From Leidyana gryllorum EB-2025a (lineage: Eukaryota; Protista; Apicomplexa): a stretch of 64,000 nucleotides of DNA. Below, in pieces: positions 1,241 to 63,877 of this stretch. The stretch is from positions 62,001 to 126,000 of the forward strand of contig JBLWGC010000109.1 in the NCBI GenBank assembly GCA_048772705.1, written 5' to 3'. The notes under the pieces are model-generated. The model was not told the DNA's origin and ran no database searches. It worked only from the letters and a program-made list of their open reading frames with translations. Every line of letters starts with the position of its first letter. The stretch's first letter is position 1. A program made the translations under genes and the position numbers.

Positions 1241-4200
1241 ATGCCACCCATTCCCGCCCCGCGGAATCTGAAACTCAGTGAGCCCTCGCTCCACCGCAAA
1301 AAAGCTTCCTCCAGCAACGGCGTTCCCCTCTGGGCATATCAAGGTACATTCTCCACCTTTCCCCGTCCACAAACAAACTATTCAGGTGTCCAGCAGCCGT
1401 GCTCCAACATGGATATCGAAGGCCCCGTAGATATGGAGTCAGTTCGCCTCCCCAAAATTGACCAACCAATCATCGTTCTTCCACAGGTCCGAGGAGGAAG
1501 ACTACACCGAGTCTGCTGATGAAGGTGTTCGAGACTACAGAGTTGGTGGCTATCATCCTGTCAAAGTTGGGTAAGTCCTCAAACCACCGCCACACCGACT
1601 CTATCCGATCGCCGCCCTCACTCAACTCACAGCCGTCTCCCAATCCCTCCGCCACACACTCTCCTCGCCACACACTTTTTCATCGCAGCGATGTCTACAA
1701 CAACTGTTATCGCATTGAAGCCAAACTCGGCTGGGGACATTTCTCGACTGTTTGGCTCGCTACAGACTGGCGGTAAGCACAGTAACCGGTCTCACATGAT
1801 CGTCCCGCTTATACCTCGATCACAGCTACAATCCGCCCAAGTATGTCGCTATAAAGTTCCAAAAGTCCGCCCGACACTACTTTGAGGCTGCCCATGATGA
1901 GATCGAGCTGCTACAAGTCGCTGCACAGCCGCGCTTCGCCGAACGAGAACCAGAAATAGGCCTCGACTCGGATATAGCGGTGAGAGACGTGCGCTACCCC
2001 GTCTCCATCATTCTTCTCTCACAGGCCAAAACAGGGGGAAGATTCCCACAAGGCTGCGGGGTTGTAACTCTCCACGACTACTTCATACATAGTGGGCCAA
2101 ACGGACGTCACGTCTGCATGGTCTTCGAGGTCATGGGACCCAACCTCCTCACTCTCATCAAGCATTATAACTTCCAGGGTGTCCCGCTTGATCTAGCGCG
2201 ACGCATCGCAGTCCACATTCTCGTAGGTCTCGATCATCTCCACCGACGATGCGGTATCATCCACACTGACTTGAAACCGGAAAATGTTCTCGTATCGAGA
2301 CCACCGCTGCCCTTGCCCAAGTCGGCAGTTGAGTATTTGCAACGGCGCGCTAAACTCGGTAGGGATACAATCCACGCCTCTCCTGGAGACAAGTCAGCTG
2401 GAGAGGAGGATGAACCCTCCTCTTCTCGAACAACCCCTCAAGAGATCAAGTTGCCAAGGACTAATATCCAGAATCTCAGTGGCCCTGCCTTGCGGAAAGC
2501 AAAGGCCAAGAAAGCCAGTAAGTGCCCAAGTAATGTTGCTCGGCGGCCTAATATTCATTTGGTCGCTCCACGATGCGCGGCATGTGCGATGGTGTGCACA
2601 ATGCAGTGCCTGCTGATGCATCCGTTCGCACTGTGCCTTGCGCTGTCATGCGTGTTGAGAGAAGCTTAAGCGTTTTGCATCTGTATATGTGCTTTTTGTT
2701 GCAGAGAAGCGCCGGCAAGCGAAGAAGAAGAAGTTGAACAAGGCTAAGAATGTGATTGCTGCTAAAGAGTGTGATTCGGACGGACAAGGTGCTGGGTCAG
2801 TGGCTTCTGGCAGTCCCAGACACTCCGCAGATGCGGCGGTAGTGGTTCCTCCACCTGTGACTGGCGTGAAAAAGAGCCCGGCAGCGGCAGTCAAGCGGCG
2901 TCCTCGCCACCGTGACTTATTTACCGCCTGTTCTGAGTTGCCTACCGCCCTACGACTCGCTCCGAGTGGTTCTGAACCGGCGTTGCATCGGATACGCTTT
3001 GACGAAGAGTCTCCCACTGGCAAGTCGTTGTATCTTGAAATGCTGCTGGGCAAGCCACCCTATAATCACGCTGTGTACAAGGCCAACTATCCTGACCTGT
3101 TCGCAGTGTCTCCGAGCGGAAGTCGGGGCGTTGAGCGGTCATTGCATTGGCTCCCTCGCAATACATATGATAAGACTTCCCGCAACATAGCCCCACTAGG
3201 TCCTGAGAGGGATCCGTCGCCCGACTTTAGCCTTCCCCCACCCCACAATGCTGACGAACACCCTGGCGAATCAAAGACATTTACGATGCTGATGACGAGC
3301 GAAGGCGAAATCGATCTGAAGTGAGTTCTTGCCTAAGTGAGGGTCTTTGAGTATCAATCCCTGCTACCATCAGACCTTCCGATGCGAGCTTATTTCACTC
3401 CGAGGATGCCGAATTCAAAATTGTAGATCTTGGCAACGGGTGTTGGACCAATCGACACTTCAGCTGTGACATCCAAACCAGACAGTATCGGTCGCCAGAA
3501 GTTTTGGTATCAGCCGACTACGACACTTCTGCGGATCTTTGGTCTCTCGCATGTCTCATTTTCGAACTTGTCACAGGCGATTATCTCTTCGAGCCCAAAG
3601 GTAGCGAAGACTACTCACGAGACGAGGATCACATGGCATTGGTGAGTCACGAGAGAAACTCTACACCACCCAAGTGGACAATCGAACCCGCCGTGGGGGC
3701 AAAAGGCGATCTGTCGGACGTCTTTCAGTGGTGTATGCACTGTCCTCGTCTCTGCTCCGAGTGCGATCGCAATGATGATGATGTCTCTTCTTTTTGCAGA
3801 TAATTGAGCTGCTTGGACCATTGCCGGAAAGTTTGTTGCGAAGGGCCCGCGATGTGGATCAATATTTCCTGCCTGATGGCACTTTGAAGAACATCCAAGA
3901 TCTGAAGTTCTGGGGTATTGAAGACGTGCTGATTCATCGGTACCATTTCAGTCGCAACGAAGCCAGTTATCTGGCGGACTTTTTGCTCCCGATGCTCGCT
4001 CTGGAACCCAAGAAGCGAGCAACCGCGAAGCAAATGCTAAGTCATCCTTGGCTACAGTTGGTGGGAACCGCCACGCATCCAATCCCGGAGGAGGTGAGTT
4101 TTAAACAAAGGGGGTGGCACGACCTCTTGCTAACCTCAGGAGTGTCACGCGACGCTGGACACGAGAGCCTTCGCTCGGAGACAGCATCCCGAACTCCTGG

Positions 4201-36085: not shown

Positions 36086-39000
36086 TTGATGGACAGGTGG
36101 AGGCAAATATTCAAAACCAAAGAACCCGATCCGTTACCCCGACGTGTAGGTGGAACGCCTCACATCATACTTGCTGCCCCCCAAAGTGACGAGGAAGAAG
36201 AGGAACAGCTGCGCAATCCCTCGTCCTTTGGATCTTCAGCGACCCCGCAACAGCTTGGAGCTAGCGCCAATCTTCTCGGCGCTGCTGAAGACCCTCCCAG
36301 CTCCTCCAATTCCTCGAGTTCCTCGTCCGAAGACGCTCCGCCCCAAGTGATAGCCCGAGAGCCGAATCATGGGCGACCGCCCCAACCCGAACCTCAGGGC
36401 TCCGATGGCCAACCTCCGGAATCTGCTGCTGCTCCACCTCAGCCCGAACCTCAGCGCTCCGATGGCCAACCTCCGGAATCTGCTGCTGCTCCACCTCAGG
36501 TGCCCGCGACTCCGGTCCCGGTTGCCGCGGCTCGGGCCCCAGTTTCCGCGACTCCGGTCCCGGTTCCCCCCACTCCGGCCCTGATCTCCACCACTCCGGC
36601 CCCAGTTCCCGGGATTCCGGGTCCAATGTCCGCGACTCCGGCTCAGGTCTCCGCTACTCCGGCTTGGATCTTTGCTGCACCGAATACAAACTTAGTGTCA
36701 CAAGAGGAGTTGGCTGGGCCCATAGGCTCGCAGACTGCCCGCAGAGCTCGGAATCGATCGTCTATCGTCCCTTATGTACTCGACACTCATCTCGGTACAC
36801 GTCCCAAGTTTAATCGACTACCGACTACGTGGGTGCAGCTGCAAAAAGACCAGTGCTATTTGTCGGCGGGGCTTCTGCATGAAGAGTTCGCTAAGCAGCA
36901 ACGACGGGTGCATGGCGGGTCCGTTGAGAGCAACATTTGGAGAGTGATTGGTCACAGTGGGAGGTCCCGAGCCCTCACGCCGCCAGTATGTCGGGGCATA
37001 GTGGATTGGTGTGACGCGAAGTTTGACAAGGAATATGACAAAGCTCATGGTGAGCGCGAGAGGAGGGCCCTGGGAAACTGGGAATATCGGTCAAAGCTAC
37101 CGAAGAATCATAATGAGGCCTGCGATTTGGTTCATGAGTTGAAGAAGGCGGCGGTGGAGTACCATCAACGTCATCAGGCGCTTTTCTCCGAGCAGGAAGA
37201 GCAGTTGCGATGTACGTTGCGCTCGCGGATCCACCAGCTGTATCACTACTATGAGCACATAGTGGATGAGCACGATGACATCGTCATGAGAGCCATGGAG
37301 CTCCGGGTGCGAGCGAGTCGGTTAGTGCAGATCAACAAAGGGAGCGAGGACCGAGCGCGCGCGGACTTGTTGCAAGACCGTCTGCAGAGATGTCACACTC
37401 GCTCCGATGAAGTTTTGGAGTCGCTGTGGCGTCATGCCAAAGCCTTCCGCGAAGCGTATCGTCTGACTGGCGATACTCAGCTCGACATTCAGACAAGTGC
37501 TGAAAGTTTAATGAAATTAGAGAGCCATCTCAAAGAGTACACCGGGTGGAAATCTGCCGCCGAAGACAGTTTACGATCGACCACCCACGCCCTATTAGCG
37601 TTCGAGAGAACTTTGATGACTCGATGGCTGCTTCTCTGGGAGATGACGCAAAAGGAGCTCGTTGGGTTACGCAACTCATTGCTGAATGAACGATCGTTGC
37701 TTTTCGCGGGTATGCATACGTACACGGCGTCTCAGAACTCCGTTCGAGCGAGTGTTTCGCAAGCCCACCAGGCGACCATTAGAATTCACGCCGGACTGTT
37801 GGATATGCAGTCTCGTTTCCGATCTCTGGCGGACTACAAGCGGCGACACGTGATCGAACTTGAGCATTTCGCAAGCCAGCGCAATGTTGTCCGCAAAGTC
37901 TCCGGGGCATACTGTGATCTCGATCTGATACAACGCTTAGCCGGACAATCGAATAATGATGTCAATGGCCGTAATATCGTCTTAGGAGGCCGAGTGCGGA
38001 GATCACAGTCTCTGGAGTGCAAAGCCGTCTCCGCGGGAACAGAGCTAAAGTTGCGGCGAGCCAAATATATTAAAGACCTCGAGGTTGTATACGACCGAGT
38101 GTCAGCATTGCATTTGAAACCCAGTCGCACCACTCGGACAGCCCTGGACCGCATGAGACAGCTTTCTTACGACAACTTGGTGTGGCTCAATGAGTATCTG
38201 ATGCGAGAAAGAATGGCAAGATTGGAAGCTTTGATAGTCAATCTGCGATCAGTGCTGATCAATGATGTATTAGACACCGAGAGGGCTGCATCAATGTGCG
38301 CCGATGCGGTGATACAATGTGTTGATGAGCATCAAATAGAATTCATTTATAATCAATTGAAAGTGGTCATGGAGGCACTTCACGGTGTTCTCGAAGCCTA
38401 CCGAGGACGAGATGAATCATTCATACGGAATCTTGTAGGCAATGTCACCCATATGAGGCATCTCAATACATACCCCTTCGATCCTGACATCCAGTCGGCC
38501 GTCGCGGGACTGACTGGTTTACTTTTGAGGTCCGATCGAACCCTCCAAAGTTTTGTGGAATTCATGGGACCCGGGCATGTACCCATGACTGGAGTTTGTG
38601 TGTACGACGTGCTGCAAGTGAACTCGTGTCCAATCTTCAATGTGTGCAACCAGATTTTACACGCGCTGGCGGATCGCTCGCGTAGTATGGTGAATGTTCC
38701 CCTTGTCTCCAACCCTGTCACTGTTCTCAACTATTTGGGAAATCTGATCGCGCAGTGCCAACAACCACCCCCTTCGGTTGATTTCAGTCAGTTATACCGC
38801 TTCTTTGTACCTGAACCCCCAGAGTTGCCTCCTGGCTATCATCTCTACCCGGTTCCACTGGAGTTTGTGGTTGATACAAATTCGAAGATTCTGGAAGAGC
38901 AACGAAGGGTGCAGCGGGACCTTGGCGTTGAAATGCTCCGGGCGCGCCAATACGATGAGCAGACCCGCTTCTGTCAGGGATTGCTTGTCTCGATGCAACA

Positions 39001-41725
39001 AGGCTTACTCCCGCACATCGCGGAGTTGATGGCACAAACGAGTAATCACGCTGTCGAGGAAATTCGGCAAAGAGTTCTCGGTGAAGCCGCTCTTTGGGCT
39101 CTGCGCGAGGGTCTTATTGCAATTCCCCATGAGCAAACACCCAATGCCCCTCAACCCGTACCTGTCATAACGCCCATGGGCCATCAAAGAATAGGCACCG
39201 TCTTCGTCAACCCCACCGACCAAGCACCGTCAGCCTCGCCCTACTCCTGTCAGCCTCCACAAAGTCAAATCGAAGCGACACCATCCGCTCTTCCCGCCAC
39301 ACAGCCACCGGTGGTGGGTGCTGAGACCCTCAACGCCGCTTCTACAGGCCCAACTTGGTCAAGCGGTACATCCTTCTTCCAATCCGTAACTCAAGCTGAG
39401 CCCCCCTCCGGAGGTGTGCCTCCCGCCACGTCACCCCAGCCGGCCACCTGGCCTGGGGTGCCTCAGGGACTGCAGCCTGAGTCCCAGACACTCCCGGCGC
39501 AAGCTGTTATCGCGATTGAGAAATCCTTCGAAGTGCTTATGGGTGGTCAAACCCTCACAGCCGGGGCTGGGAATGGCGCGCAAGCCTCGCAGACAGTGAT
39601 TGTGGGTGGACAGCCGGCTGTTCCGCCTCAACCGACTGTCAGCTCTGAGCCGATGGGAGGACGGTCGGAGGAGCCGCAGACCAAAGTGGTCACCACCACA
39701 ACGGCGGGATCGGAGGCGGTGGTCGGGCCGGGGATTGTTGTGCCTGATACCGAGATGGCAGAAATCGACACTCTGCCAGGTACAACTGCTCCTACTACAT
39801 CGACTGTGCAGCAACCTGGTCTGGTGACAAATGCAACTGATCGAGCAGTGGCCGCAACTACCGCAGCCAGTGGTGGTGTCAACGATCCGCCAACAACATC
39901 GACTCAGCAGGTACGCAACGGTTTGCCGACACCTCCGACTCGTCGACGTGCCGGCCGTCCGAGGAGCGGTGGAGACAGTCCTACCTCTGGTGCACGGACC
40001 CAGGCACAGCGAGTGATCCCTTCTGACTCAGCGGCGCCGTCCCATCCCACGATGGAGGAGGATATGGACGAAGACGCAGAGAGAGCGACTGTGGACAAGC
40101 GGAGACGGATGGCGGCGCAGGCTCCAAGTACAAAGGACCTTAAATATATACCGTACACGCAAGTCGCCCGAGGGGGCGAGAAGGAGAATGTGGCACCTTC
40201 AACCCAACTAGTGCCACAGGGAGAAAGTGAAGAGCCCACTGGCAGTTGGCTGTCGAACATACTGTATATCAACGCTGTTGGGCAAAATGCCCGTCCGACC
40301 TCAAGTAATGAGGAGACGATCGAAGTTGGAGGGAAACATGTCGACACCAAAGACGTAACTGCAGTTGAGCACACCCGCAACGCAAATGTGATGGAAGAAC
40401 CCACTGTTGTGGTCGACGATGATGATATGGACGCCGACACCGAGACGGCGACACTTCCGAGGGTCCGGCAAGAAGACCGCAAAATAAGGCCGGATTCTAC
40501 TATCCGGATAGAGCTGGAATGCACTCCGCCAGAGTCGCCGAAGGATGAAGGAGAACGTTATGTCCTTGTAGGGGGGTCCACCAGCTCGAGAGCGCCACCG
40601 CCAGCGCAGGCCACGACTCAGAGACGGCGACGGAGGCCGTCATCAGCGGAACAGTCCAGACAACGTAAAAATCGAGCAGTCGCCGATCTAGCCAACATAT
40701 GTCAAGGAGCGACGGCTGTTTCGAGTACACAGCAGCAGCAGCAGGAAGAAGAAGAAGTAGAAGTTCCGACAACCGAGGGGAAGTTGCCGCCAGCGACCGG
40801 CACCAGCAGCGTGGAGCAGTCCACAAGGCGACAACGCGTAACACCGGCTGCACGGTCACCCCGTAGAGCCGAGTATGATTTGGAGCGCGAACCCTGGATG
40901 GCCACCGTGCTCGAACAACGTGCGGATCGATTAATCGATGAACTCTTCTCTCCAGACCCACTGCCCGGCCAGGCAGTGACCACGAGACGGCACGATCCGA
41001 ATGACCTCCGCGTTAGGCGGGCTGCAATGGTTACAGAGGCTTTATATAAAGACGGCGGGCGCTTTTTGGACAAGTCAGATATGGACATGGTGAAGGAAAG
41101 GTACGGCCTCAAGCCAGAAGACTCTGTGGGACTGATCGAGCTGTTCGCAACCGGCGCAATTATCATGGAGGACGTGGAGCGCACTGACGCAGTTGCGAGG
41201 TTGGAGCGCATGAAGATGGGTATAGCCAGTGCCTTCCGGAACCACTCTGCATCGGACGAGCAAGGCTTACCCACCAAGATGGTTGATGCTGATGACGAGC
41301 CGAACGCCGAGTTCGAAACCCCCCGCGGAAATGTACCGGCTAGGCCGACTAGCAATCGGACGTCAGCCTGGGCGGATGCTCACACCCCATACAGACCTGC
41401 TGGCCTAAAACCTAAAGCGCCGGTGGTCATGAGCCCAGTCTCGATTTCGTCTGGATCTGAGGCAACTCCTCCGCTGCTTGTCCAGCGAAATGTTTCGGAT
41501 CGAGAGCCTGGGGCGCCAGAAGCCGAGTACCCGTCTGACTGGGACCGCGACTACGCTGAGGTCGCAGAGGAACGATTTGCGCACATTAATTTCCCGTGTA
41601 ATCCTCATGATCTGGAGTTGGAAGGATACGGTAGCGACCAAGCGGCCGACGACGAGCAAGAGGAAGATGAAGAGGGTACCCCTCCGCCGCTTCCTGCGAG
41701 CAGAACAGTACCGACCACAGAATGA
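36086..41725 (+). CDS. Very large intronless orphan protein (1879 aa): Pro-rich N-terminus, helical/coiled-coil core, disordered C-terminus
   Basis: 5.6-kb uninterrupted frame; no recognisable catalytic motif. Confidence 0.75.
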   Translation: MMDRWRQIFKTKEPDPLPRRVGGTPHIILAAPQSDEEEEEQLRNPSSFGSSATPQQLGASANLLGAAEDPPSSSNSSSSSSEDAPPQVIAREPNHGRPPQPEPQGSDGQPPESAAAPPQPEPQRSDGQPPESAAAPPQVPATPVPVAAARAPVSATPVPVPPTPALISTTPAPVPGIPGPMSATPAQVSATPAWIFAAPNTNLVSQEELAGPIGSQTARRARNRSSIVPYVLDTHLGTRPKFNRLPTTWVQLQKDQCYLSAGLLHEEFAKQQRRVHGGSVESNIWRVIGHSGRSRALTPPVCRGIVDWCDAKFDKEYDKAHGERERRALGNWEYRSKLPKNHNEACDLVHELKKAAVEYHQRHQALFSEQEEQLRCTLRSRIHQLYHYYEHIVDEHDDIVMRAMELRVRASRLVQINKGSEDRARADLLQDRLQRCHTRSDEVLESLWRHAKAFREAYRLTGDTQLDIQTSAESLMKLESHLKEYTGWKSAAEDSLRSTTHALLAFERTLMTRWLLLWEMTQKELVGLRNSLLNERSLLFAGMHTYTASQNSVRASVSQAHQATIRIHAGLLDMQSRFRSLADYKRRHVIELEHFASQRNVVRKVSGAYCDLDLIQRLAGQSNNDVNGRNIVLGGRVRRSQSLECKAVSAGTELKLRRAKYIKDLEVVYDRVSALHLKPSRTTRTALDRMRQLSYDNLVWLNEYLMRERMARLEALIVNLRSVLINDVLDTERAASMCADAVIQCVDEHQIEFIYNQLKVVMEALHGVLEAYRGRDESFIRNLVGNVTHMRHLNTYPFDPDIQSAVAGLTGLLLRSDRTLQSFVEFMGPGHVPMTGVCVYDVLQVNSCPIFNVCNQILHALADRSRSMVNVPLVSNPVTVLNYLGNLIAQCQQPPPSVDFSQLYRFFVPEPPELPPGYHLYPVPLEFVVDTNSKILEEQRRVQRDLGVEMLRARQYDEQTRFCQGLLVSMQQGLLPHIAELMAQTSNHAVEEIRQRVLGEAALWALREGLIAIPHEQTPNAPQPVPVITPMGHQRIGTVFVNPTDQAPSASPYSCQPPQSQIEATPSALPATQPPVVGAETLNAASTGPTWSSGTSFFQSVTQAEPPSGGVPPATSPQPATWPGVPQGLQPESQTLPAQAVIAIEKSFEVLMGGQTLTAGAGNGAQASQTVIVGGQPAVPPQPTVSSEPMGGRSEEPQTKVVTTTTAGSEAVVGPGIVVPDTEMAEIDTLPGTTAPTTSTVQQPGLVTNATDRAVAATTAASGGVNDPPTTSTQQVRNGLPTPPTRRRAGRPRSGGDSPTSGARTQAQRVIPSDSAAPSHPTMEEDMDEDAERATVDKRRRMAAQAPSTKDLKYIPYTQVARGGEKENVAPSTQLVPQGESEEPTGSWLSNILYINAVGQNARPTSSNEETIEVGGKHVDTKDVTAVEHTRNANVMEEPTVVVDDDDMDADTETATLPRVRQEDRKIRPDSTIRIELECTPPESPKDEGERYVLVGGSTSSRAPPPAQATTQRRRRRPSSAEQSRQRKNRAVADLANICQGATAVSSTQQQQQEEEEVEVPTTEGKLPPATGTSSVEQSTRRQRVTPAARSPRRAEYDLEREPWMATVLEQRADRLIDELFSPDPLPGQAVTTRRHDPNDLRVRRAAMVTEALYKDGGRFLDKSDMDMVKERYGLKPEDSVGLIELFATGAIIMEDVERTDAVARLERMKMGIASAFRNHSASDEQGLPTKMVDADDEPNAEFETPRGNVPARPTSNRTSAWADAHTPYRPAGLKPKAPVVMSPVSISSGSEATPPLLVQRNVSDREPGAPEAEYPSDWDRDYAEVAEERFAHINFPCNPHDLELEGYGSDQAADDEQEEDEEGTPPPLPASRTVPTTE
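36385..36665 (+). repeat. 57-nt direct repeat x2 followed by degenerate 21-nt repeats
   Basis: cccgaacctcag(g/c)gctccgatggccaacctccggaatctgctgctgctccacctcag twice; then ATPVPV/ATPAQV-coding units. Confidence 0.9.
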
Positions 41726-41960: not shown

Positions 41961-42896
41961 GTGTGGCCTTTTCGCATTCCCATGGCTCGAAGACGATCAA
42001 CTGGTCGAAAGCTTGGCAGAAAGGGCAGGGCTGTCGCAGTCCGTGTGGGGCTCGGAGGTCGCGTAAAACTGTCCGATAATCTACTTAATTCCTATGCTCG
42101 GCCGATAAGTGGGGCCAAAGGCCTCAATAACTGGATACCCCTCTGCGTCGCAGAATCCAAGAGTTTCATGAGTGACATACAGGAGACCGCATCCGCTGTT
42201 CCCCTCCACACTTCCTCCGTTGACGGCTCTGTCAGTGGTTTCGTCGTCAATCCTGTTGGAGACGATCCTCTCTGGTCGGGCAACGCGGAACTACAGCTAC
42301 CCCAGATTGAGACACTCAGGGGCTTGCTGCTGACAACCCCCGAGGAAGACTGCCACAGCCCGATCATAAAAGACGTCTTGCTACCTAACGATAGCGACAG
42401 CTTGGCCATGCAGGCGAGCCGGAACACATTAAAGAGACGCCAGATTGACTTCGTCCTGGAAGGCTTGCGCCACCCCCAGCGTCTCCCGGACGTATCACTC
42501 GTCGAGGCGCTGGAAGATGTTTACGTCCACCTGGAGGAATATTTCGAACTCTGTACAGCGTCCAGCATTGAACCCGCACTCAGTGAGAAGGAGATATGCC
42601 ACGCCGTCCTGGGCCGGCTACCATCAGGACTAGGCACAATGTATACCAAGATGAATGACGGGGATCAGTTGGAGAATGTGTCGAGTCTCACTGACCTGGT
42701 AGAGTACATTGACTTGATTGAGCGCCACGACAGCCTCCGTCACCGTCGAGCTGCCACTCTTTTTGTGCCCCTGCGCACTGGACTTACCAGGCACGAACGT
42801 CAAATCAATGTCTGCGAGAAGCTGATCCACCTCATCAAGAGGACGGAGCAGTCGTTTGATTTACCCTACAACCCATGCAACGTGAGTTGGAGTTGA
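41961..42896 (+). CDS. Copia/Ty1 Gag capsid-like ORF (no pol nearby); probable start near 42168
   Basis: LSEKEICHAVLGRLPSGLGTMYTKMNDGDQLENVSSLTDLVEYIDLIE resembles the UBN2/Retrotran_gag_2 consensus. Confidence 0.45.
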   Translation: MWPFRIPMARRRSTGRKLGRKGRAVAVRVGLGGRVKLSDNLLNSYARPISGAKGLNNWIPLCVAESKSFMSDIQETASAVPLHTSSVDGSVSGFVVNPVGDDPLWSGNAELQLPQIETLRGLLLTTPEEDCHSPIIKDVLLPNDSDSLAMQASRNTLKRRQIDFVLEGLRHPQRLPDVSLVEALEDVYVHLEEYFELCTASSIEPALSEKEICHAVLGRLPSGLGTMYTKMNDGDQLENVSSLTDLVEYIDLIERHDSLRHRRAATLFVPLRTGLTRHERQINVCEKLIHLIKRTEQSFDLPYNPCNVSWS

Positions 42897-43193
42897 ACCA
42901 ATCCGCGCGGTCTAGAGAACAACATCTACCACCTCAACTGAACAGACACTGTGCCCACATAAACCGCAGCAGAACTCTGGTCTGTCGCGACATCGGGATA
43001 TTTGCTCCATCTGGCGAAGGGATGGCACCGAGTCGCTGAGCGGTTAGTTAGGTTTGCTTTTTGACTGTGAAGCCTCCACTGACTTTCCTTTTTCCCCACT
43101 GAGACTGAATAGGGGCGAGAGGTTACGTGTTGAATGGTAGAAGGGCGGACAGAGTGTCAAAACACGTGTGTTTTTTTTTCTGACGGGCCGAAG

Positions 43194-43617
43194 ATGTCTT
43201 ATATCCATCCGTGCCGTTCACATCCAAGGCAAATGTAACTTAGAAGAGGCACTGTATTATACCCTCCCGAACAGATTGATGTAATCCATTGTCTTTCCTC
43301 CGGCCTTTGGGCCCGGTGTTTGGGCCAGAGCCTCTGAAGGAAGTGATACATGCGACATGATCCGTGCCTTCCTCTCCACACAGTTCCTGACTAGCTACCA
43401 CGAGTTGTGCACCAAGTCTTCGCGCCTGCCAGATGTCCAAAAGATAAGCAATGTCCACTGGCTCGTCAGTGTGCTACTGCGTGGGGAGATGCTACTTTGC
43501 AGGGAGGATCTGAGTCGTCCAGCCCCCAATCTGGCTAGAATTAAAGAGTTGATGGGGATGTTGGTTCGAATGAGCGAAAAATTACACGATAACAAGACTG
43601 TTTCTGACTATCTTTGA
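43194..43617 (+). pseudogene. Frameshifted copy of ORF 44116-44523
   Basis: 1-nt loss (accctcccgaacag vs accctcgccgaacag) breaks the 5' part; the 3' part is intact (43357-43617). Confidence 0.6.
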
Positions 43618-44115
43618 ATGTGGTCGCACTCGCTCGCGGTGGTGGCGAAACGAGAGATCGCCCACCCACCTGATGAGACAAGTCGCGGTGGGCTACGAAT
43701 GCTAATTAGCACGTTATCTCTCTCTCCACCGCCGAGAAGGAGACCTCGTTGTCAGAAACCCCCAGTAACGAGCAGTCGTTTGAATTACCCTACTGCCCAT
43801 GCATCCACCCGCTCTTACGTGAGTTGGAGTTGGAGTTGAAGTAATCCGCGCAATCGAGAGAAGATCATTTATCACCGTCCACTGAAGACACACTGTGCCC
43901 ACATAACCCGCTGCAGGAAGCTGGTCTGTCGCGACATCGGGCAATTTGATCCAACAGGCCAACCCATGACACCGAGTCGCTGACCGTTTGATGAGGTTTG
44001 CTTTTGAACTGTGAACACCGGCAGTCACATGATGAATGTGTAGAAGGGCGGACAGAGTGTCAGACAGATAGCTTTCTGTAATGCAAAAGGTGTCTTTTTT
44101 TATGACGCGCCAAAG

Positions 44116-44523
44116 ATGACCATTATCAGAGCCCGTCGTGTTGCAGGGAAATGTAATTTGGAAGAGGCACTGTATTATACCCTCGCCGAACAGATTGATG
44201 TGATCCATCAAAACTGCCACAAGGTTGGATCAATCAAGTTTGAAGGAAGTGATACATGCGACATGATCCGTACCTTCCTCTCCACAAACTTCCTCACTGC
44301 CTACCACAACTTTATCACCCTGGCCTCGCGCCTGCCAGATGTCCGAAATATAAGCAATGTCCATTGGCTCGTCAGTGCGCTACTGCGTGCGGAGATGCCA
44401 CTTTGCAAGGAGGATCTGAGTCGTCCAGCCCCCAATCTGGCTAGAATTAAAGAGTTGATGGGGATATTGGTTCGAATGAGCGAAAAAGCACACCATTATG
44501 AGGATATTGTTGAGTATCTTTGA
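44116..44523 (+). CDS. Hypothetical helical protein (intact copy in tandem unit 2)
   Basis: 135-aa ORF paralogous to 43357-43617. Confidence 0.45.
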   Translation: MTIIRARRVAGKCNLEEALYYTLAEQIDVIHQNCHKVGSIKFEGSDTCDMIRTFLSTNFLTAYHNFITLASRLPDVRNISNVHWLVSALLRAEMPLCKEDLSRPAPNLARIKELMGILVRMSEKAHHYEDIVEYL

Positions 44524-44761
44524 GTGTGGTCACACTCGCTCGCGGTAGTGGAGAAGCAAGAGATTCGCGCACCCACGTGATCAGACAACTCGCGGTGGGC
44601 GCTAATTAGGATGTGATCTCTCTCTCTCAACACGCGAGAAGGAGACCTCGTTGTCAGGAACCTCAGAGTGCCCAGTAACGAGCACGAGTTTGAGGACAAG
44701 CGCAGTGGGGACAGAAACCCTCGTGTGCAGAATGCCCTGAGTTTTTCTGGGGAAAAGGATA

Positions 44762-48039: not shown

Positions 48040-51000
48040 TCAAAAGAAGGCGTCACTATATAAATTGCATTCTGGTCCTGTACAAGCGGATCCGGCGGAA
48101 GCGCCACTCAAGAAACTCGGCTGCAAAGGACTCAGACTGACGTTCACCGTCCATTGTGCCTCGCGATAATCCTTTATCAGACCCTCCCTGTTGCAATGGA
48201 GCATAAATAATGAGAAAACAGGCGGAGGACTCACGGCATGTCGAATGTGTGTTGACCATCTTGACTGGATACCACTGCTTGCAGTGGCGCTGATTCGAGA
48301 TAGCTCTTCATCCGGATGGCGGTCAACTTGGCTCCAGCAGACGCATAAAGCAGATCCAAGACAGCTGCAGACAGGGGATCGGATCCCATGATATTGCTGG
48401 AAGCCTGAGCTGCTGCCATCGGAAGACAACGCTGGATCACAGATCCCTCTTGTCCCGGTGCATAAGACGATGAAGCTTCCAATACGATTCGTGGCATGAA
48501 GGTGAACTGCGGAACCTTCAACGGCAAATCTCTCTTGGCATTGAACAACGCGATAGCAGTTGCTTCGTAATCCTGATCTTCGCTGTCCTCATCAGCGGCC
48601 ACGTCACCTGGCCCGGAGTAGTTGCTGTCAAAGTGCTTGACCTGGTCCAGAATACGCGAATAAGCAATGCGGGCTCGTTGAGGAATCCAGTTCCAGTCAT
48701 CCTCAGTGAACTCCCAAACTAGCCCCGTAGATTCCGCCGAAGCGATAACAGCATATCCTGAGACAGATGCCTCAGCGTCTCCATAGGCACTCGGGTTTGC
48801 GGCTGTGTGTGTTTGCGGCTTGGGCAGCTCGAACGCGAACAGCGGACTGCCAGTGAAGTTGGCTTTGATGTAAGCCACGGGTTTCAGCAATAGATCGTCT
48901 GTGGTCGCTTCGTCTGGAGACGTGACGGGTGTCCACTGCCCTTGCGAGGCAACACCGCGCACAACGATATGGGCTTTGGGAAGAGCAATATTCTTATTGC
49001 GCGGTACTTTCTGAGCGTTAATCACGACGCGTGCGCCCACTGCATCCTCTACAGAAGTGACACGGTTGATGGCTTCTTGGAGGACGCACATGGGCACCCA
49101 GGTGCAGCCACAGTTATGGCGGCGCTGAACTACCTGGCTCTTGTTCCAGTTGGGGGTATAGTAGCGGAATAAGTTCTCCGCATCCGTGTACACGAGGTCA
49201 ATTGCATTCAGTACTTTGTGGTCCTTCTTGGAGATCAACTCCAGCTGAGCTGTCTGGACTACGAATGAGGGCCAATCATCTTCACTTTCGGATACATCAT
49301 TTACTTCCCAGCATGCCATGAGTGGGGGGACCATTGCGGTACGAACAGTGAAGTCCCATTCGACACCCAAGTCCTCACTCGTGGCAGTGTACATGTCATT
49401 GTCACTGTTTTGGGCGAATTCCACTTCAACATCTACGTCCACGTCCACGCTCTTTGGAGTTGAAGAAGTTTCATCAGAAGAATTTGCAAAAGCCGTAGCC
49501 TCACCGCCGCTCGTCAAGACCTGTTGGCCGTAGAAATCACGCATAGCCATCGCTGACTGCCTCGCGGACGCGTCCAAATTTGCAGCTTGTAGCATTCGGC
49601 GTTGGACGCTCGCTTCGCTTACGCTCCCGATCTGCTGCTTGAGCAAAGCCGACAAGACTTCGGTCAACTGTGCAGCCTGCTGATTCAAAGCAGTGGTATT
49701 AGTAACAGAATTCAGACCCGGTAACTGAGCACCCAGAGAGTTCAGCAAGTCAGTCGCAGAAGACTCGGCACTCTGGACCATCTTGCCGGGGGAGTAGGTG
49801 GGAAGTGTCATGAAGCCAGCGATCAGCGAGCTGATCTCCGGATCGGCCAACAGAGCCGTGATGTCCGGATTGGTGAGTAGCTGGGAGACATCCATCTCTG
49901 CTCCCTGTGTCAAGAAGGCACTCGCCAGTTCAGTCAGATTGACATTGGAGGCACCAAGAGTCTTGAGGACATTGTTCAGGTCCACTGACTCGAGTGTTTC
50001 CATGACGGCGTTCAAGTCGACATTAGTTGCTACCAAATCGTCCATCAGCTTATTGAAGTCGATTTGCGAGCTGCTGACAGTGCGAGCGATTTCATTCAAG
50101 TCAAAAGGCGAGTTCGCCAGCTCGCTCGCCAGTTTCGTCAAATTCAAGTTTGATCCTCCGAGCGCCGTGGCGATCGCGTTCACATCAACTTCGGTCAAAT
50201 CTTTCTTCTCTTCAGCGAACTCACTCCCCGACGTGATTGTAGTTGAGCCTGCGACCGACTGAAGGTCTGCATCGCTCTTGGATGCAGTGTTCGATAGGCC
50301 AAGGCTGTTCAACAATGAGTTCAGATCCGAAGCCGCGCCGCCAGAAGGGGTACTCGTACCCGAAGTGGCCGTCGCCGGGGTGCCCAGTCCAAGAGAATTG
50401 AGATAGTTGTTGATTGTGTCCAGACCAGCGTTGTTTGACGTACTGGCAGACTGACCGGTCAAGCTGCCCAAGCTGTTGAGTCCATCAAGTCCTTGCTGGA
50501 AGTTGGGCAAATTCGACAGCCCGTTCAAAAGTGAACTGAGGGTGGTCGTCGTCGAACTGCTCGAAGGACTCGCAGTTGTGGTCGTAGTGGAGCTCGCAGA
50601 CAGACCCGAGAGGGCATTCTCCAATGAATTGGTCGCAGTACTCGCAGTCAGAGCGTCCAACGCGGAGTTCAGAGAGCTCAGATCGAGTCCGTTGCCGAGG
50701 TTTGATAAGGAACCCAGGTTTTCGAGACTACTCAGATTGTTGAGACCGCTCGTAAGCGACTCCAATTGCTGAGAGAGATTGTTGATGCCCAAATCCTGGG
50801 CAGTGCCACTGACGTTGTCCGTATCGGAGTCCACACTCTGCAACGCATCCTTGCCCGCGTCACTGTCCGTGGTAGTTGCCGTCGCATTGTTGGTGGTGGG
50901 AACAAGCTGTTGAGCCAAGCTGTTGAAGTCGAAACTCTGAGCCAATTGATGTGCCAAGTTGCTCAGGTCCATGCCTCCCAGCATATCGGAGAGGTTGCCC

Positions 51001-54000
51001 AAGTCCATACCGTCGGTCAACTTGGAGATGTCAAAGTTATTGGCCAAGTCGCTCAGACTGCTCATATCGAAGCCTTGAAGTTGTTCGCCGAGCTTATCGG
51101 CGTCCAGAACGTCCGCGAGGTTTCCCAAACTGCTCGCGCTGGCACCCAGATTCGACAACTGTTGGGAGAGATTGCTCGTGTTGCCCAACTGCTGAGCCAA
51201 ATTGGTCAGATTGGTGGTGCTCCCCAGACCAGCGAGCTGTTCAGTCAACGAGTTGGCATTGAGGTTACTCAGTTGAGAGGCCAAGTTGCTCAAATTGCTG
51301 TTCCCGGCCAAGCTGGATAAGCTGTCCGTGAGGGAAGAGGGGGCGAGATTTCCGAGTTGGGACGCCAGATCAGTCAGATTGGTGTTACTGGCCAGACCAG
51401 ACAGTTGCTGCGAGAGTGAACTGAGGTTGACGTTACTCAACTGTGACGCCAGATTGCTCAGGTCAGTATTGCTGGCCAAGCCAGAGAGTTGCTGGGCCAG
51501 CGATGACAAGTCGAGGTTGTTCAGCTGTGAGGCCAAGTTGCTGAGGTCCGTGGTTGTCCCCGAAGTAGCAGAGTTAGCCATTCCACTCAGGGTGGAGAGG
51601 TCGTCGTTTGTGAGGGCAGAGCTGATGGGCTCAATCCCACTCAAAGTCCCCAAATTGTTGGATAAATCTTCGGGAATGGGTACTGCAACTCCGGCCTCTT
51701 CGCTACTTTCGGCGGCCTCCAACCGGCGGAAACCCAAACCTTGCAGCGCTCCTGTGATGCCAGCCACATTAAGAGCTCCGGTTTGGGGGCCCATCAGATT
51801 CCCCAAGCCAGACGACAGCGAGTTGGCAATGTTTCCCAGTCCGCCACTGCCCAGGTTCAAGCCGGCTGCGGGTTGAGCACCTCCCAAGTTCCCAAAACCG
51901 TTAAGTAGAGGGCTGGTCAGCGTATTGATCCCTCCCATCAGAGGACTTGCAAGCGACGAGATCAGAGGAGATCCCACTTGTTGGAGATCATAGTTTGGCT
52001 CTTGGTAGATAGCCTCTTGAGAATTCTCGTAGGCAGACGGGGGCACGTCAGAGTAGCTGGCCGCTTGAGGCCAGTAGGAGCTGATGGCTTCACTGAGCTC
52101 CTGCAACCGACGCAGGAGTTTTGAAGCGGGGGTCTCGGTGTGATCTTTCTCGTCGGTGTCAGACCGATCTGTGTCGCTGGTGGCCTCAACGTCAGCATCA
52201 GACCCATCTTCGCCATCGTGTTTCTTGTTGGATTGAGCGAAGCCGGTCACGTTGGCTTTGTACTCCTGCCAGAAAGTCTCGAGTCGGTCAGGGAGCTCTC
52301 CATTCTTCAACTCGTCGACAACCTCAGAGAGAGCTTCAGCCAAACTGTTAGCGGCACTTTGCATATCCTCTTTCCAGCTGGGGTGGTTTTCGGTGATTGT
52401 TCCGACCAGTTTGTTGTAGGAGCTCTCGAGCCAGTTACTGAGACGTCGTCTCTTGGCTCCTTCCTTCTGTTCTTCCTGTAGTTTGGCCATTGCCATCAGC
52501 ACCTTCTTGGCAGAGTCGCTGAGTTGGATTTCTTTGGCGGAGAGATGACGTCGACCGTAGTCAAAGTCCATCGGTCCCATCGAACCCATCATCGGACTGC
52601 CGCCCATCATGTTGCCGTAGCTGCTGTATCCTTGGCGATGTCCCCCATAGCCTCCATATTGACGGTTCTCCCATCTTTCGGAGTTACGGTCCATTCGAGA
52701 GTCGTCGAATTCATCAGAGTCAGACGAGAAGGCACCGAACATTTGCGTTTCCTTGTTGTCCTTGGCCGCATTGGCTGCCAACTTGGCCAGCTCAGGGAAC
52801 TGACTGTTAGACGCGACCAAGTCAGAGTCATCTGCGTCATTGACGTGATGTCTGAGGTGCATATGTCCTTCACGACCACTAATGGCTGGTGCCCCCAGCA
52901 CTTCTGGCTCATCAGCGTACATCGGGCGCTTCTCCCCAGCCAGACGCATTGCGTTGGGCGATAGCGGATCCTTCGCAGGTCCACCAGTGAGGGGACCCAT
53001 CTTGTTCTGAGGGGGAGAGACGTTCCCGCCCACCCCAAGCAGAGAGCCGGAGAAGCCCATCAACTCAGCCTCTTCTGCCGACATTGGAAACTTTCCACCT
53101 CGACCGCCCATTCCGGGGTGGTCGTGCTTATTGCCACCGGGCATCATGGGAGGCGCCCCCATTGGACTGCCCATACCACCCAAACCTCCCAGGCCTCCCA
53201 GACCTCCTAGGATCCCACCGACTCCCTGATTCGAGGTAACCATAGTGTTCGGCGGACCTCTGTTCTGAGGCTGCTTGTTGCCTCCCACCAACACTTCGTA
53301 ATCGGGCTCCAACCCCGTCATCGTCTTGGCCGAGTCCCCCGACTGAGAGTTGTACCTCGGCTGGTTGGAACTGCCCTGCCCCGACATTTGAGGTGGTGGC
53401 GGAGGGGAGTTCGGAAAATTCTGCATCCCATCTCGGGAAGGAGGCGGTGGAGGAGGTGCTCCTCCCCTCATATCACGAGGGGGAGGAGGGATCTTCATGT
53501 CCGAGCGCACGTTCAGCAAGTCAGAGTTCGGTGGGAACTCGTTGCCGCCAAGAGCAAAGGTGCCCATAGGTCCATTGAGTTGGAGATTTACTTCCTCGGG
53601 GTAGACAGGATTCACACGGACACCGAAAGCTTCGATCTCGTGATGGAAGTGACGATCACCCGGAGGATGACCCCCCATTCGATGACGATCAAACATATCT
53701 CCACCGCGATGAGGCATTGGGGGCATTGGGGGTCGGCGATCGAATCCGCCGCCCATCATCGGTCGGTCATATCCTCCCCCCATCATGGGACGATCGAAAC
53801 CGCCCATCATGGGCATCCGGTCCATTGGCATCGGGCCCGGACGATAACCAAAGTTATCTCCTCGATCATAACGATCCCAAGAGTCCAGACGTCTTCTGCC
53901 GTCCTTTTGGGCTTCGAAGGCTGTCTTGAGCGCAGCGTCAAAGTCAGCCAGAGCTTGTTTGACAGATTTTGCTTCGGAGAGACGTCTACCCAAGCCTTTG

Positions 54001-55280
54001 TTGATGGCATAGGTAACCAAATCGGTGGGAACGACTGCCGATATTCCCATCTGTGCCAGGGCAGTTTGGACCGCCTGAGTCAGCTCGCCGGTGGTAGTGT
54101 CCAAACAAGGCGTCATGCCATTGAGGCAACTCGCGAGGTCAGGGTAGTTGTATGCTTCAGTGGCCATACCAGAGAGCTTGACAGCTGATTGTCCAGCCGC
54201 GTTAAGATAACCATTCGTAACAAATGCATTCACAAGTCCGGAGATTACGGCATTGTTGCCGTCTTGAGTGAGAGTAGAGAGAGAAGATGCCAGAGAATTA
54301 GTACTGCTGGACCCGAGGAGCGGATTCGAGCCAAGAAGCGGACTGGACCCAAGTGATTGAAAATCATTAACAACGTTTGATAAATCAGATAGCGATGAAA
54401 GAGAGTTTGACAGAGTGTCAGTAAGAGAAGAAGAAGTACCGGTACCCGACAGCAGCTGACTTAGAGTAGATGTCAAGTCGTTGTTGTTGAGAAGATCTGA
54501 CACACTGGTCGATCCAGTCGTGGTACCCAAAGCGTTCGACAGCGTGTTCAGGGTGTTGAGTGCGTTCGTCAAGTCAGAGATCGATGTTCCGCTGCTGCTG
54601 GCACCGGTAAGCGTATTCGCCAGATTCGACAACTGACTCAGGGAATTGAGACTGTTGGTAAGGGACGAGAGGTCAGTTAGCCCGTTGGTGAGCGAGCTGA
54701 GATCAGACAGTCCAGAGGTCAGCGAGGACAAGTCATTCAAACCACTGGTGAGTGACGAGAGGTCAGACAAACCACTGGTCAGAGATGACAAGTCGTTCAA
54801 ACCACTAGATAGAGGGTTCACGCTATTCAGCAGATTGCTGAGATCTAACGGGTTCGAGCTCGCGGTAGTAGTTGCAGTTTCACTCTCTTCGGACATCGTG
54901 GCCTTTGCGGACGCGTCTGTCGCCACAGTTCCCGAAGTAGTTGCCGAGTTAGAGTTGGTCGCTGTCGCTCCTGTCAGTGTGTTGAGCCCTTGGGTTAACG
55001 AGCCTAAGCCAGAACTCAAGTTGTTGAGGGCCGACAGTGCACTCGTGAGGTCAGACAAGTTGGCGCCATTCTTCAGTAGATCACTCAATGGGTTAGCAGC
55101 AGCTCCACTTAGGAGATTGGTAAGCGAAGAAAGGTCCAACGGATTGTTGCTGACAGCAGCTGGCGCCACTGTTGTTGTTGCCGTAGCGGCGGCTCCCAAA
55201 AGAGAATCAAGACTCAAAGCATCATCTGCTTGTGCTATACCACAAGCGAGCACAGCACACAAGAAGACAGGTTTGACCAT
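48040..55280 (-). CDS. Giant secreted modular low-complexity protein (~2400 aa) with seven RRL-type motifs and a folded C-terminal domain; 2 exons
   Basis: Signal peptide MVKPVFLCAVLACGIAQA; S/L/N/T amphipathic repeats; an M/G/P-rich module. An intron after ...FDMP gives a last exon ending ...YSDAFF*. Confidence 0.88.
54640..54815 (-). repeat. 30-nt (10-aa) tandem repeat SGL(N/S)DLSSLT
   Basis: At least five consecutive units. Confidence 0.9.
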
Positions 55281-56332
55281 GACTGTTGACACTTCGCGAA
55301 GAGGTCCCAGCAGTCACAATCTGCAAGCGACTTAGAAAATATGACTTGAAAAGAAGAGGTTATACACTTCTTCGAAATCTTCTCTGCCATGAAGGAGACA
55401 GGAGCACACACAAACTCCACTCAGCCTGGCGGAACCGATGAGGTAGAACTGCATTTTTCAGGCTATTTCAGTGATCAACGGGAGGTGTCTGTGAGTGTCG
55501 ACTTGTGACTTTGCGGTGGGCGGCTCCCACTTCTTGCTGCTTAAGAATGGTGGTGGGCTTTCTTTCCTCCACGCCGTTCCCCTGCTGAAGCTACCAACTG
55601 AAAATGTGTGTATATCGCTGACTCACGGGACCACGACAGGGCCGTTCCATACCAGCTCTGTCTGTAGCCGCAGCTCCCTTTTACCAACGATTTTACGCCC
55701 GGCCTGCGTGACCCGCTGACACGGAGGCAGTTTTTAATGTCCCGATAGACCAGTGAGCCAAAGGAGAATGTGTTACTGTCACTGTCACTAGAGCAGATCT
55801 CTACACGACTAGCCCACCATTGCCCAGCTGAAGATCCCCGTGCGACTCCCAATCAAGAGTACTAAGCGTTGATGCTGAAAGTCCGAAACGCCACGCAAAA
55901 GACAAACTGACCGAAAGACAGATTCAAGGAAGTACTTCTTTTGGACCGTTATTGGACGGGTCCGGGCAGCCCCTGGAGGGGGCGTTGTATGTCGCAATTG
56001 GTGTCTCCAGCTCCTACAAAGACTTGCATCTTGAGCCTACTTGCTTGAGCACGCGCTCTACTTTGAAATATGGCAAAGACGGAGAAGGGCGGAGACAGGA
56101 GGAGACAGTGTCTTCTGCTCCAGGGAAGCATTTGATTTTGGACAAATAACACTATATACACCGACCACCTCCTCCCTCAGAAGGGTGATTCACTGAATTG
56201 TAATATGGATTAGAACGGATGAAATCTCAACACTGGTTGGGCGCTGGAAAGTCGATTGATAGTACATCAGATGGTTTGTGGTGCTACGATTGAACTCCCG
56301 ATAACGGGTTGTACTGCTGTTTTTTGCGTTTG

Positions 56333-56433
56333 TCAGATCGTATTGGCGTCGCTCTCAACAGGCAGTGGGAGGATTCAGGGGGGTTCACCCTGAACAACAC
56401 CCGCGGCATCAGCTGGCTTTAACGATTCATCAT
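56333..56433 (-). ncRNA. Box C/D snoRNA-like RNA, copy 1
   Basis: ATGATGA (56433-56427) ... CTGA (56336-56333); terminal GCGTT/AACGC stem; internal CTGA and TGAGA (D'/C'-like). Confidence 0.72.
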
Positions 56434-56485
56434 TTGAACGCTTACGTTTCATTACTGCGTGAAAGACGAGTATCATTTACAGTAG

Positions 56486-56586
56486 TCAGATTGTATTGGC
56501 GTCAATCTCAGCATTTTATGCGTGGATTCAGGGGGGTTCACCCTGAACAACACGCACAAACTTGGCAGTCTCGGACGATTCATCAT
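56486..56586 (-). ncRNA. Box C/D snoRNA-like RNA, copy 2
   Basis: Same 101-nt C-to-D length and the same conserved blocks as copy 1. Confidence 0.72.
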
Positions 56587-63796: not shown

Positions 63797-63877
63797 GCGG
63801 GGATGCCCGAGAGGTTAAGGGGGTGGCCTTAAGATCCACTGGCTCTGTCCGCGTGGGTTCGAACCCCACTCCCCGCA
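63797..63877 (+). tRNA. tRNA-Leu(TAA)
   Basis: Acceptor GCGGGGA/TCCCCGC-A; D arm GCCCGAGAGGTTAAGGGG; anticodon loop CT-TAA-GA; long variable arm; T loop GTGGG-TTCGAAC-CCCAC. Confidence 0.95.

Follow-up and report, generated by a model that had tools for sequence, protein, structure and literature searches.

Toxoplasma ASP5 cuts its substrates after RRL, the Toxoplasma export element (TEXEL), anywhere in the chain (PMC6212819), and plasmepsin V cuts after RxL. Plasmepsin V also processes proteins that are not exported and acts as a general secretory maturase (10.1101/2023.07.12.548774). Together with the oocyst-wall precursors of Eimeria and the wall-associated precursors of diatoms, these systems show that neither the motif nor the enzyme class nor the multiple cutting of wall precursors at RxL is new. 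Here we analyzed a stretch of 64,000 nucleotides (nt) of Leidyana gryllorum EB-2025a (contig JBLWGC010000109.1, positions 62,001 to 126,000), referred to as the window, which carries the gene for a giant secreted protein (55280-48040, minus strand, one 47-nt intron, product of ~2397 amino acids (aa)). This protein contains seven RR(x)L sites, most of which are conserved in insect gregarines and are probably cut by an ASP5-type aspartyl protease. The gregarine family, the number of sites (7-12), the unassigned C-terminal domain and the lineage are new.

Enrichment and placement of the RR(x)L sites

The initial annotation had described seven RRL-type motifs, and all of them were located at the places claimed (Table 1). 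Compared with 0.33-0.42 sites expected, the count of seven was reached in none of 5000 shuffles, with the same outcome whether the whole protein was shuffled or only residues inside windows of 30-200 aa. For strict RRL, five sites stood against ~0.2 expected, and again none of 5000 shuffles matched the count. Plain RxL was not globally enriched in the precursor (10 versus 8.3 expected, p=0.31). The RR(x)L excess of about 20-fold compares with ~1.4 times expectation for RRL in the genome background, a sample of roughly 0.3 Mb in which ~100 other long open reading frames (ORFs) contain at most two RRL each. As had been claimed, the Ser/Leu/Asn/Thr modules are otherwise almost free of Arg: of the 19 Arg residues of aa1-465 and aa910-1897, which leave aside the Gly/Pro/Met module and the C-terminal domain, 16 are located inside the motifs. 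Since the codons of the motifs differ, the sites are not a DNA repeat. The view that the motifs bound compositionally distinct modules was likewise supported, as the sites lie at composition change points more than random positions do (p=0.001-0.004). The same placement was found in the orthologues P0001 and P0003 (p between 0.0002 and 0.03); with a shorter window, sites 4, 6 and 7 are weak boundaries.

Conservation in insect gregarines

Homologue searches were performed with the two exons queried one by one. The search with the C-terminal domain detected six homologues among 1.84 billion representatives, two of which are full length, one from Gregarina sp. Poly (2161 aa) and one from a sequencing run (2648 aa). 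Partial homologues are those of Blabericola migrator and Protomagalhaensia wolfi, a close relative with 81% identity (contig L002) and a distant one with ~30%. All named homologues belong to insect gregarines (Gregarina, Blabericola, Protomagalhaensia), and the named orthologues derive from hand-picked cockroach-gregarine trophozoites (PMC8051059). A homologue search with aa340-470 remained empty owing to a word-index limit, and BLAST still found this region in P0001. No synteny was seen with contig L003. Contigs L002 and L004, which are metagenomic or transcript contigs, are both frameshifted at the start of the C-terminal domain (L002:3083-3114 and L004:590-647), and L002 additionally lacks ~20 codons near the frameshift. 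These frameshifts are probably assembly errors, though they nearly coincide in two unrelated samples.

The sites of the query comprise five strict RRL, one RHL and one RML. Conservation in orthologues, on which the initial annotation had staked its reading, holds for six of the seven, which are kept as R-x-L in blocks of 21-48% surrounding identity in distant orthologues, but not for site 3. Both full-length orthologues possess an excess of their own, with nine and seven RR(x)L sites and none of 1000 shuffles reaching the count in either. At aligned positions R-M/K/Q/S/T-L variants occur, so that Arg at P3 and Leu at P1 are fixed while P2 drifts, a pattern which fits plasmepsin V/ASP5 rather than furin. 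Orthologues also share extra sites, for instance RRL/RKL directly before the C-terminal domain as well as RRL/RML and RTL/RSL further upstream, raising their total to as many as ~12; even the most distant relative has an RRL just before the C-terminal domain. The order of the modules is conserved, insertions and deletions lie just upstream of the sites, and the residues immediately downstream are partly conserved too. Within the family, Leu follows 27 of 41 Arg-Arg runs compared to 10% in the background. At 23 of 27 family sites RRL is followed by Ser, Gln, Glu or Asp, versus 13 of 31 background sites, counted over homologous sites that are not independent; these residues resemble the Ser/Asp/Ala/Gln/Thr starts determined by N-terminomics for Toxoplasma ASP5 (PMC6212819).

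Candidate proteases in the genome

The genome assembly (15.5 Mb, 237 contigs) encodes two plasmepsin V/ASP5-like proteases, on contigs C33 and C177, both of which have predicted pockets for Arg at S3 and Leu at S1. The C33 enzyme has DSG at both catalytic motifs and all ASP5 pocket residues that were checked: Tyr-Ser-Glu in the flap, Gln in S3, Ile and Phe in S1, and in S2 a Tyr located seven residues after the second catalytic Asp. A modelling preprint names such residues for the binding of RRL and attributes the preference of ASP5 for Arg at P2 to the flap Ser and this S2 Tyr. Two RRL in its very short pro-region suggest that the C33 protease may mature itself. In the C177 enzyme Glu, Gln, Phe and Tyr are as in the C33 enzyme but the flap Ser is replaced by Ala, and no obvious C-terminal transmembrane helix was found in its open frame. 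Peptidase S8 (subtilisin) matches number 36 in the genome, with tandem clusters on contigs C35 (276-292 kb) and C43 (348-359 kb).

Gene model and predicted precursor

The gene end at 48040 given by the initial annotation was borne out. The frame 55280-48231 contains 2349 codons from its first Met without a stop, the homologues extend ~45 residues beyond the end of exon 1, and a GT..AG intron is followed by a 48-codon exon resembling the C-termini of the orthologues and matched by the family profile, which gives the product length of ~2397 aa. The gene is single-copy in the genome; three regions were searched and no paralogues were found. The precursor is predicted heuristically to enter the secretory pathway by means of a signal peptide, and both full-length orthologues likewise show Ala and then Asp-Asp after 17-19 residues. 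A transmembrane helix was not found, as no 19-residue window after the signal peptide reaches a hydropathy of 1.3, so the precursor should be soluble and secreted. Only two Cys precede the C-terminal domain in the whole precursor.

Table 1: Features of the giant secreted protein gene and the candidate proteases. Positions are those of the window unless a contig is given.
Feature	Position	Strand	Basis or remark
Exon 1 (aa1-2349 of ~2397)	48235..55280	-	frame of 2360 codons without a break, first Met at 55280
Intron, 47 nt, GT..AG	48188..48234	-	from sequence; homologues extend past the exon 1 stop
Last exon, 48 codons and stop, conserved beta-strand and two Cys	48040..48187	-	family profile positions 393-436, E=8e-10
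Signal peptide (predicted), aa1-18, predicted mature start Asp-Asp	55227..55280	-	hydrophobic core
Piece 1, ~415 aa, Ser/Leu/Thr/Asn-rich amphipathic 10-residue repeats and conserved ~90-aa domain before site 1	53979..55226	-	period 10, raised hydrophobic moment
Site 1, RRL, aa432	53979-53987	-	RRL in both distant full-length orthologues
Piece 2, 31 aa, basic short helical spacer ending in site 2	53886..53978	-	orthologues keep a spacer of 29 and 41 aa
Site 2, RRRL, aa462	53886-53897	-	RRL in P0001, RML in P0003
Piece 3, 448 aa, disordered, Gly/Pro/Met/Arg-rich, ending in site 3	52542..53885	-	G+P+M+Y 41%
Site 3, RRHL, aa910	52542-52553	-	kept only in close relative L002
Piece 4, helical basic spacer of 34 aa with site 4 at its end	52440..52541	-	site 4 RRL in 4/4 sequences
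Site 4, RRRL, aa944	52440-52451	-	RRL in 4/4 sequences
Piece 5, 112 aa, conserved three-helix module and acidic linker, ending in site 5	52104..52439	-	invariant Trp/Pro/Leu pattern, 4/4 sequences
Site 5, RRL, aa1057	52104-52112	-	RRL in 4/4 sequences
Piece 6, 128 aa, head containing Tyr and part rich in Gly/Leu, with site 6 at its end	51720..52103	-	site after conserved Gly-Leu-Gly
Site 6, RRL, aa1185	51720-51728	-	orthologues RML, RQL, RRL after conserved Gly-Leu-Gly
Piece 7, 710 aa, Ser/Leu/Asn-rich amphipathic repeats, ending in site 7	49590..51719	-	14 N-glycosylation sequons, conserved helical block aa1710-1830
Site 7, RRML, aa1894	49590-49601	-	RML, RML, RKL in 3/4 relatives; lost in P0001
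Folded C-terminal domain, exon 1 part, beta-sandwich (jelly-roll-like) lobes, four invariant Cys	48235..49451	-	30-81% identity in six homologues
Plasmepsin V/ASP5 orthologue	L009:1054-2232 (G000:C33)	-	plasmepsin V match E=8e-53
Second plasmepsin V-like protease	L025:about 1780-4185 (G000:C177)	+	short introns, long insert with two RRL

The pieces between the sites

Cutting after each Leu would yield pieces of 415, 31, 448, 34, 112, 128, 710 and ~500 residues. Pieces 1 and 7 consist of acidic Ser/Leu/Asn/Thr repeats, the hydrophobic moment of which clearly exceeds that of shuffled sequence, and a 30-bp tandem repeat is present in piece 1 at 54717-54806. Just before site 1, aa345-431 lie within a block that is 40-48% identical to the orthologues; an ESM Atlas match of this domain to bacterial clusters (0.94) was not trusted, as only 127-153 features were shared. 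Pieces 2 and 4 may be spacers, and the sequence gives no support for homology between them (p=0.31). In the orthologues, the site that precedes piece 3 is likewise followed by a Gly/Pro/Met/Tyr module, which is shorter. The helices of piece 5 were seen in a low-confidence model of aa901-1197 with a predicted local distance difference test (pLDDT) score of 42, the fold of which was otherwise unusable. In the two full-length orthologues, Tyr amounts to 5-10% in two RRL-bounded pieces compared to 0-1.4% in the other non-terminal pieces.

The C-terminal domain matches no known family. Pfam gave no significant family, and fold searches yielded generic jelly-roll/beta-sandwich matches only (VIA Z at most 6.3; TM by query no higher than 0.28 in Foldseek and Atlas). 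The AlphaFold model of the domain has a pLDDT of 63 and a predicted TM score (pTM) of 0.65. The best ESM Atlas score of 0.84, to a phage protein resembling fibronectin type III, is taken as a lead only.

Proposed processing and alternative explanations

We propose that after removal of the signal peptide a plasmepsin V/ASP5-type aspartyl protease in the secretory pathway would cut behind the Leu of most R-x-L sites. The products would be two large amphipathic Ser/Leu/Asn repeat pieces, a disordered Gly/Pro/Met(/Tyr)-rich piece, small helical pieces and a disulphide-bonded beta-sandwich domain. Made in a fixed ratio and secreted together, they would most likely form an extracellular layer with a structural function in the large feeding and gamont stage, which could be mucus or a surface coat, or else a store of material for the gametocyst wall. 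It is likely that the sequence patterns reflect cutting at multiple sites by an enzyme of the ASP5 type. A structural extracellular role is somewhat favoured as well, about evenly divided between wall and coat or trail. Cyst wall, mucus trail and adhesive, the uses put forward by the initial annotation, are candidates. Expression in trophozoites fits a coat or mucus, which has been mentioned in gregarine gliding, and fits stockpiling for the gametocyst wall too.

Several observations weigh against this proposal. The support for cutting is at the level of sequence, and transcript support comes from the trophozoite transcriptomes of relatives, no reads being listed for this species. Other ORFs with a signal peptide are not enriched in RRL in the ~0.3-Mb sample (3 versus 2.5). 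The pocket comparison is based on a pairwise alignment and the modelling preprint, and Toxoplasma ASP5 reportedly requires Arg at P2, where sites 3 and 7 have His or Met. Distant orthologues lack a counterpart of site 3, and one orthologue has lost site 7. With at most 3.9% Tyr, the pieces of the query are unlike coccidian wall peptides, and the published Toxoplasma ASP5 substrates compared have one or two sites versus 7-12 in the gregarine family. The initial annotation had further supposed about eight secreted products from one polyprotein. Orthologue conservation and the presence of ASP5/plasmepsin V-type enzymes speak for a processed polyprotein, but eight separate products are less secure: two of the pieces (31 and 34 aa) look like spacers, site 3 recurs in only one close relative, Toxoplasma GRA44 functions uncut, and Toxoplasma MYR1 and LCAT fragments re-associate after cutting (PMC6212819). 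This re-association would be in line with a different outcome, in which efficient cutting is confined to one or two sites, or the fragments of full cutting stay in one complex, and cleavage would act as a switch that matures the protein for assembly instead of releasing eight independent products. The two pieces of ~30 aa and the conserved module order are compatible with such a switch; on the other hand, 7-12 conserved sites suggest selection on each of them, and fragments cannot be widely disulphide-linked given only two Cys upstream of the C-terminal domain. This switch overlaps with our proposal on enzyme and motif; we regard it as a serious possibility, if clearly not the favoured one.

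Alternatively, the motifs might not be cut at all and might serve as sorting or binding motifs, for example in granule packaging, or as helix-start elements in a full-length fibrous protein. Partial conservation just downstream of the sites and the activity of an uncut ASP5 substrate would agree with this. Nevertheless, the sites match exactly a proven protease motif of the same phylum, a suitable enzyme is present, and their position at module boundaries with upstream insertions and deletions, as for linkers, together with gains and losses between orthologues, renders an uncut protein improbable. Another candidate is a subtilisin-like serine protease that cuts after paired Arg and leaves Leu as the first residue of the next amphipathic helix. 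Subtilisins have been proposed for the processing of the Eimeria GAM proteins, RR is present in all seven query sites, the genome contains the S8 matches mentioned above, and helices follow several sites in a low-confidence model. However, the furin-type protease named by the initial annotation as another possible enzyme is disfavoured: no kexin/furin P-domain was found in a genome search, absence from an assembly not being proof, and several aligned sites of orthologues contain just one Arg (A-R-M-L, H-R-M-L, Q-R-M-L, A-R-T/S-L), with Arg and Leu retained instead of the pair, and would not be used by a dibasic cutter. Moreover, there is no preference for dibasic sites that lack Leu (KK, KR, RRP). 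Cutting by a subtilisin-like enzyme appears unlikely. Arg and Leu might also be suspected of clustering by chance in a protein of low complexity, as the RR(x)L definition was chosen after looking and Leu makes up 13% of the protein. Such clustering is hardly credible, being refuted by the shuffles, also for strict RRL and in each long orthologue, and by the conserved positions of the sites in orthologues.

Neighbouring sequences

Between the AAA ATPase gene and the giant secreted protein gene lie two 111-nt direct repeats (56323-56433 and 56476-56586, 75% identical) with box C/D-like ends and no Rfam match at gathering score, which are possibly lineage-specific small nucleolar RNAs. Elsewhere in the window, a decaying tandem duplication with a period of ~900-940 bp and blocks of 82-93% identity was observed at 42846-44662, an intronless ORF of ~1880 aa with a coiled-coil middle, Pro/Thr/Gln-rich ends and no signal peptide at 36089-41725 (plus strand), and a tRNA gene at 63797-63877 (plus strand). 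At the start of another contig (L026-L027, G000:C230:1-20000), four near-identical ORFs of ~1170 aa recur every 6.6-8 kb and probably represent a tandem array or a mobile element.

Comparison with known systems

The gregarine precursor resembles the Toxoplasma ASP5 substrates GRA44, GRA46, LCAT, MYR1, WNG2 and IST in its signal peptide, in RRL placed anywhere in the chain and in a small or polar residue after Leu, and those substrates are matured rather than exported (PMC6212819). Likewise, the pocket of Toxoplasma ASP5 matches that of the C33 enzyme. Apart from the number of sites, the gregarine family differs in tolerating Met, His, Gln or Lys at P2, and there is no sequence homology. The gregarine feeding stage lives mostly outside host cells, unlike Toxoplasma. 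With Plasmodium PEXEL (Plasmodium export element, RxLxE/Q/D) and plasmepsin V the family shares fixed Arg and Leu and a loose P2; the precursor does not carry a single such motif near the N-terminus, since its first site is at aa432, and at the fifth position Glu, Gln or Asp is present in only some of the sites, Glu in only two of seven.

The Eimeria oocyst-wall precursors GAM56 and GAM82 are also secreted, and their RxL and RRL flank Tyr/Gly/Pro/Ser-rich pieces and have been linked to processing (PMC5718062); the concentration of Tyr in RRL-bounded pieces of the gregarine orthologues recalls this arrangement. In contrast, the gregarine protein is several times longer and dominated by Ser/Leu/Asn amphipathic repeats, contains little Tyr in the query, carries a folded domain at its C-terminus and is transcribed, in its orthologues, in trophozoites. 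Homology to GAM56/GAM82 was not detected, with no Pfam family and no coccidian name among the hits. The diatom silaffin Sil1p, silacidins, cingulins and frustulins are wall-associated precursors cut at repeated RXL, a role itself described as hypothesised (PMC5647440), and mature silaffins lack the RRIL/RRNL ends (PMC4557024), the RRxL form of which is that of sites 3 and 7. The diatom precursors have short repeats for silica deposition and no homology to the gregarine protein, whose pieces are not short Lys/Ser-rich repeats but dissimilar, 31-710 aa long and Lys-poor.

Literature searches turned up no work on processing of the RRL/PEXEL type in gregarines and no description at the protein level of a gregarine coat, mucus or gametocyst wall. 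This conserved single-copy candidate gene, which relatives transcribe in their trophozoites and for which exact cut sites and fragment sizes are predicted and an enzyme is named, makes both material and processing directly testable. The gene is also relevant to the function of plasmepsin V/ASP5 prior to host-cell export, which the role of plasmepsin V as a general secretory maturase leaves open. More tentatively, ASP5/plasmepsin V might be a true polyprotein convertase of insect gregarines, which by 7-12 cuts would release a fixed-ratio kit of amphipathic film-formers, a glue-like Gly/Pro/Met/Tyr peptide and a new beta-sandwich domain for building the gliding trail, coat or gametocyst wall. 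If this were true, it would suggest an origin of RxL processing as a matrix-building system, sharing its logic with diatom and coccidian wall precursors, and a later use for effector export.

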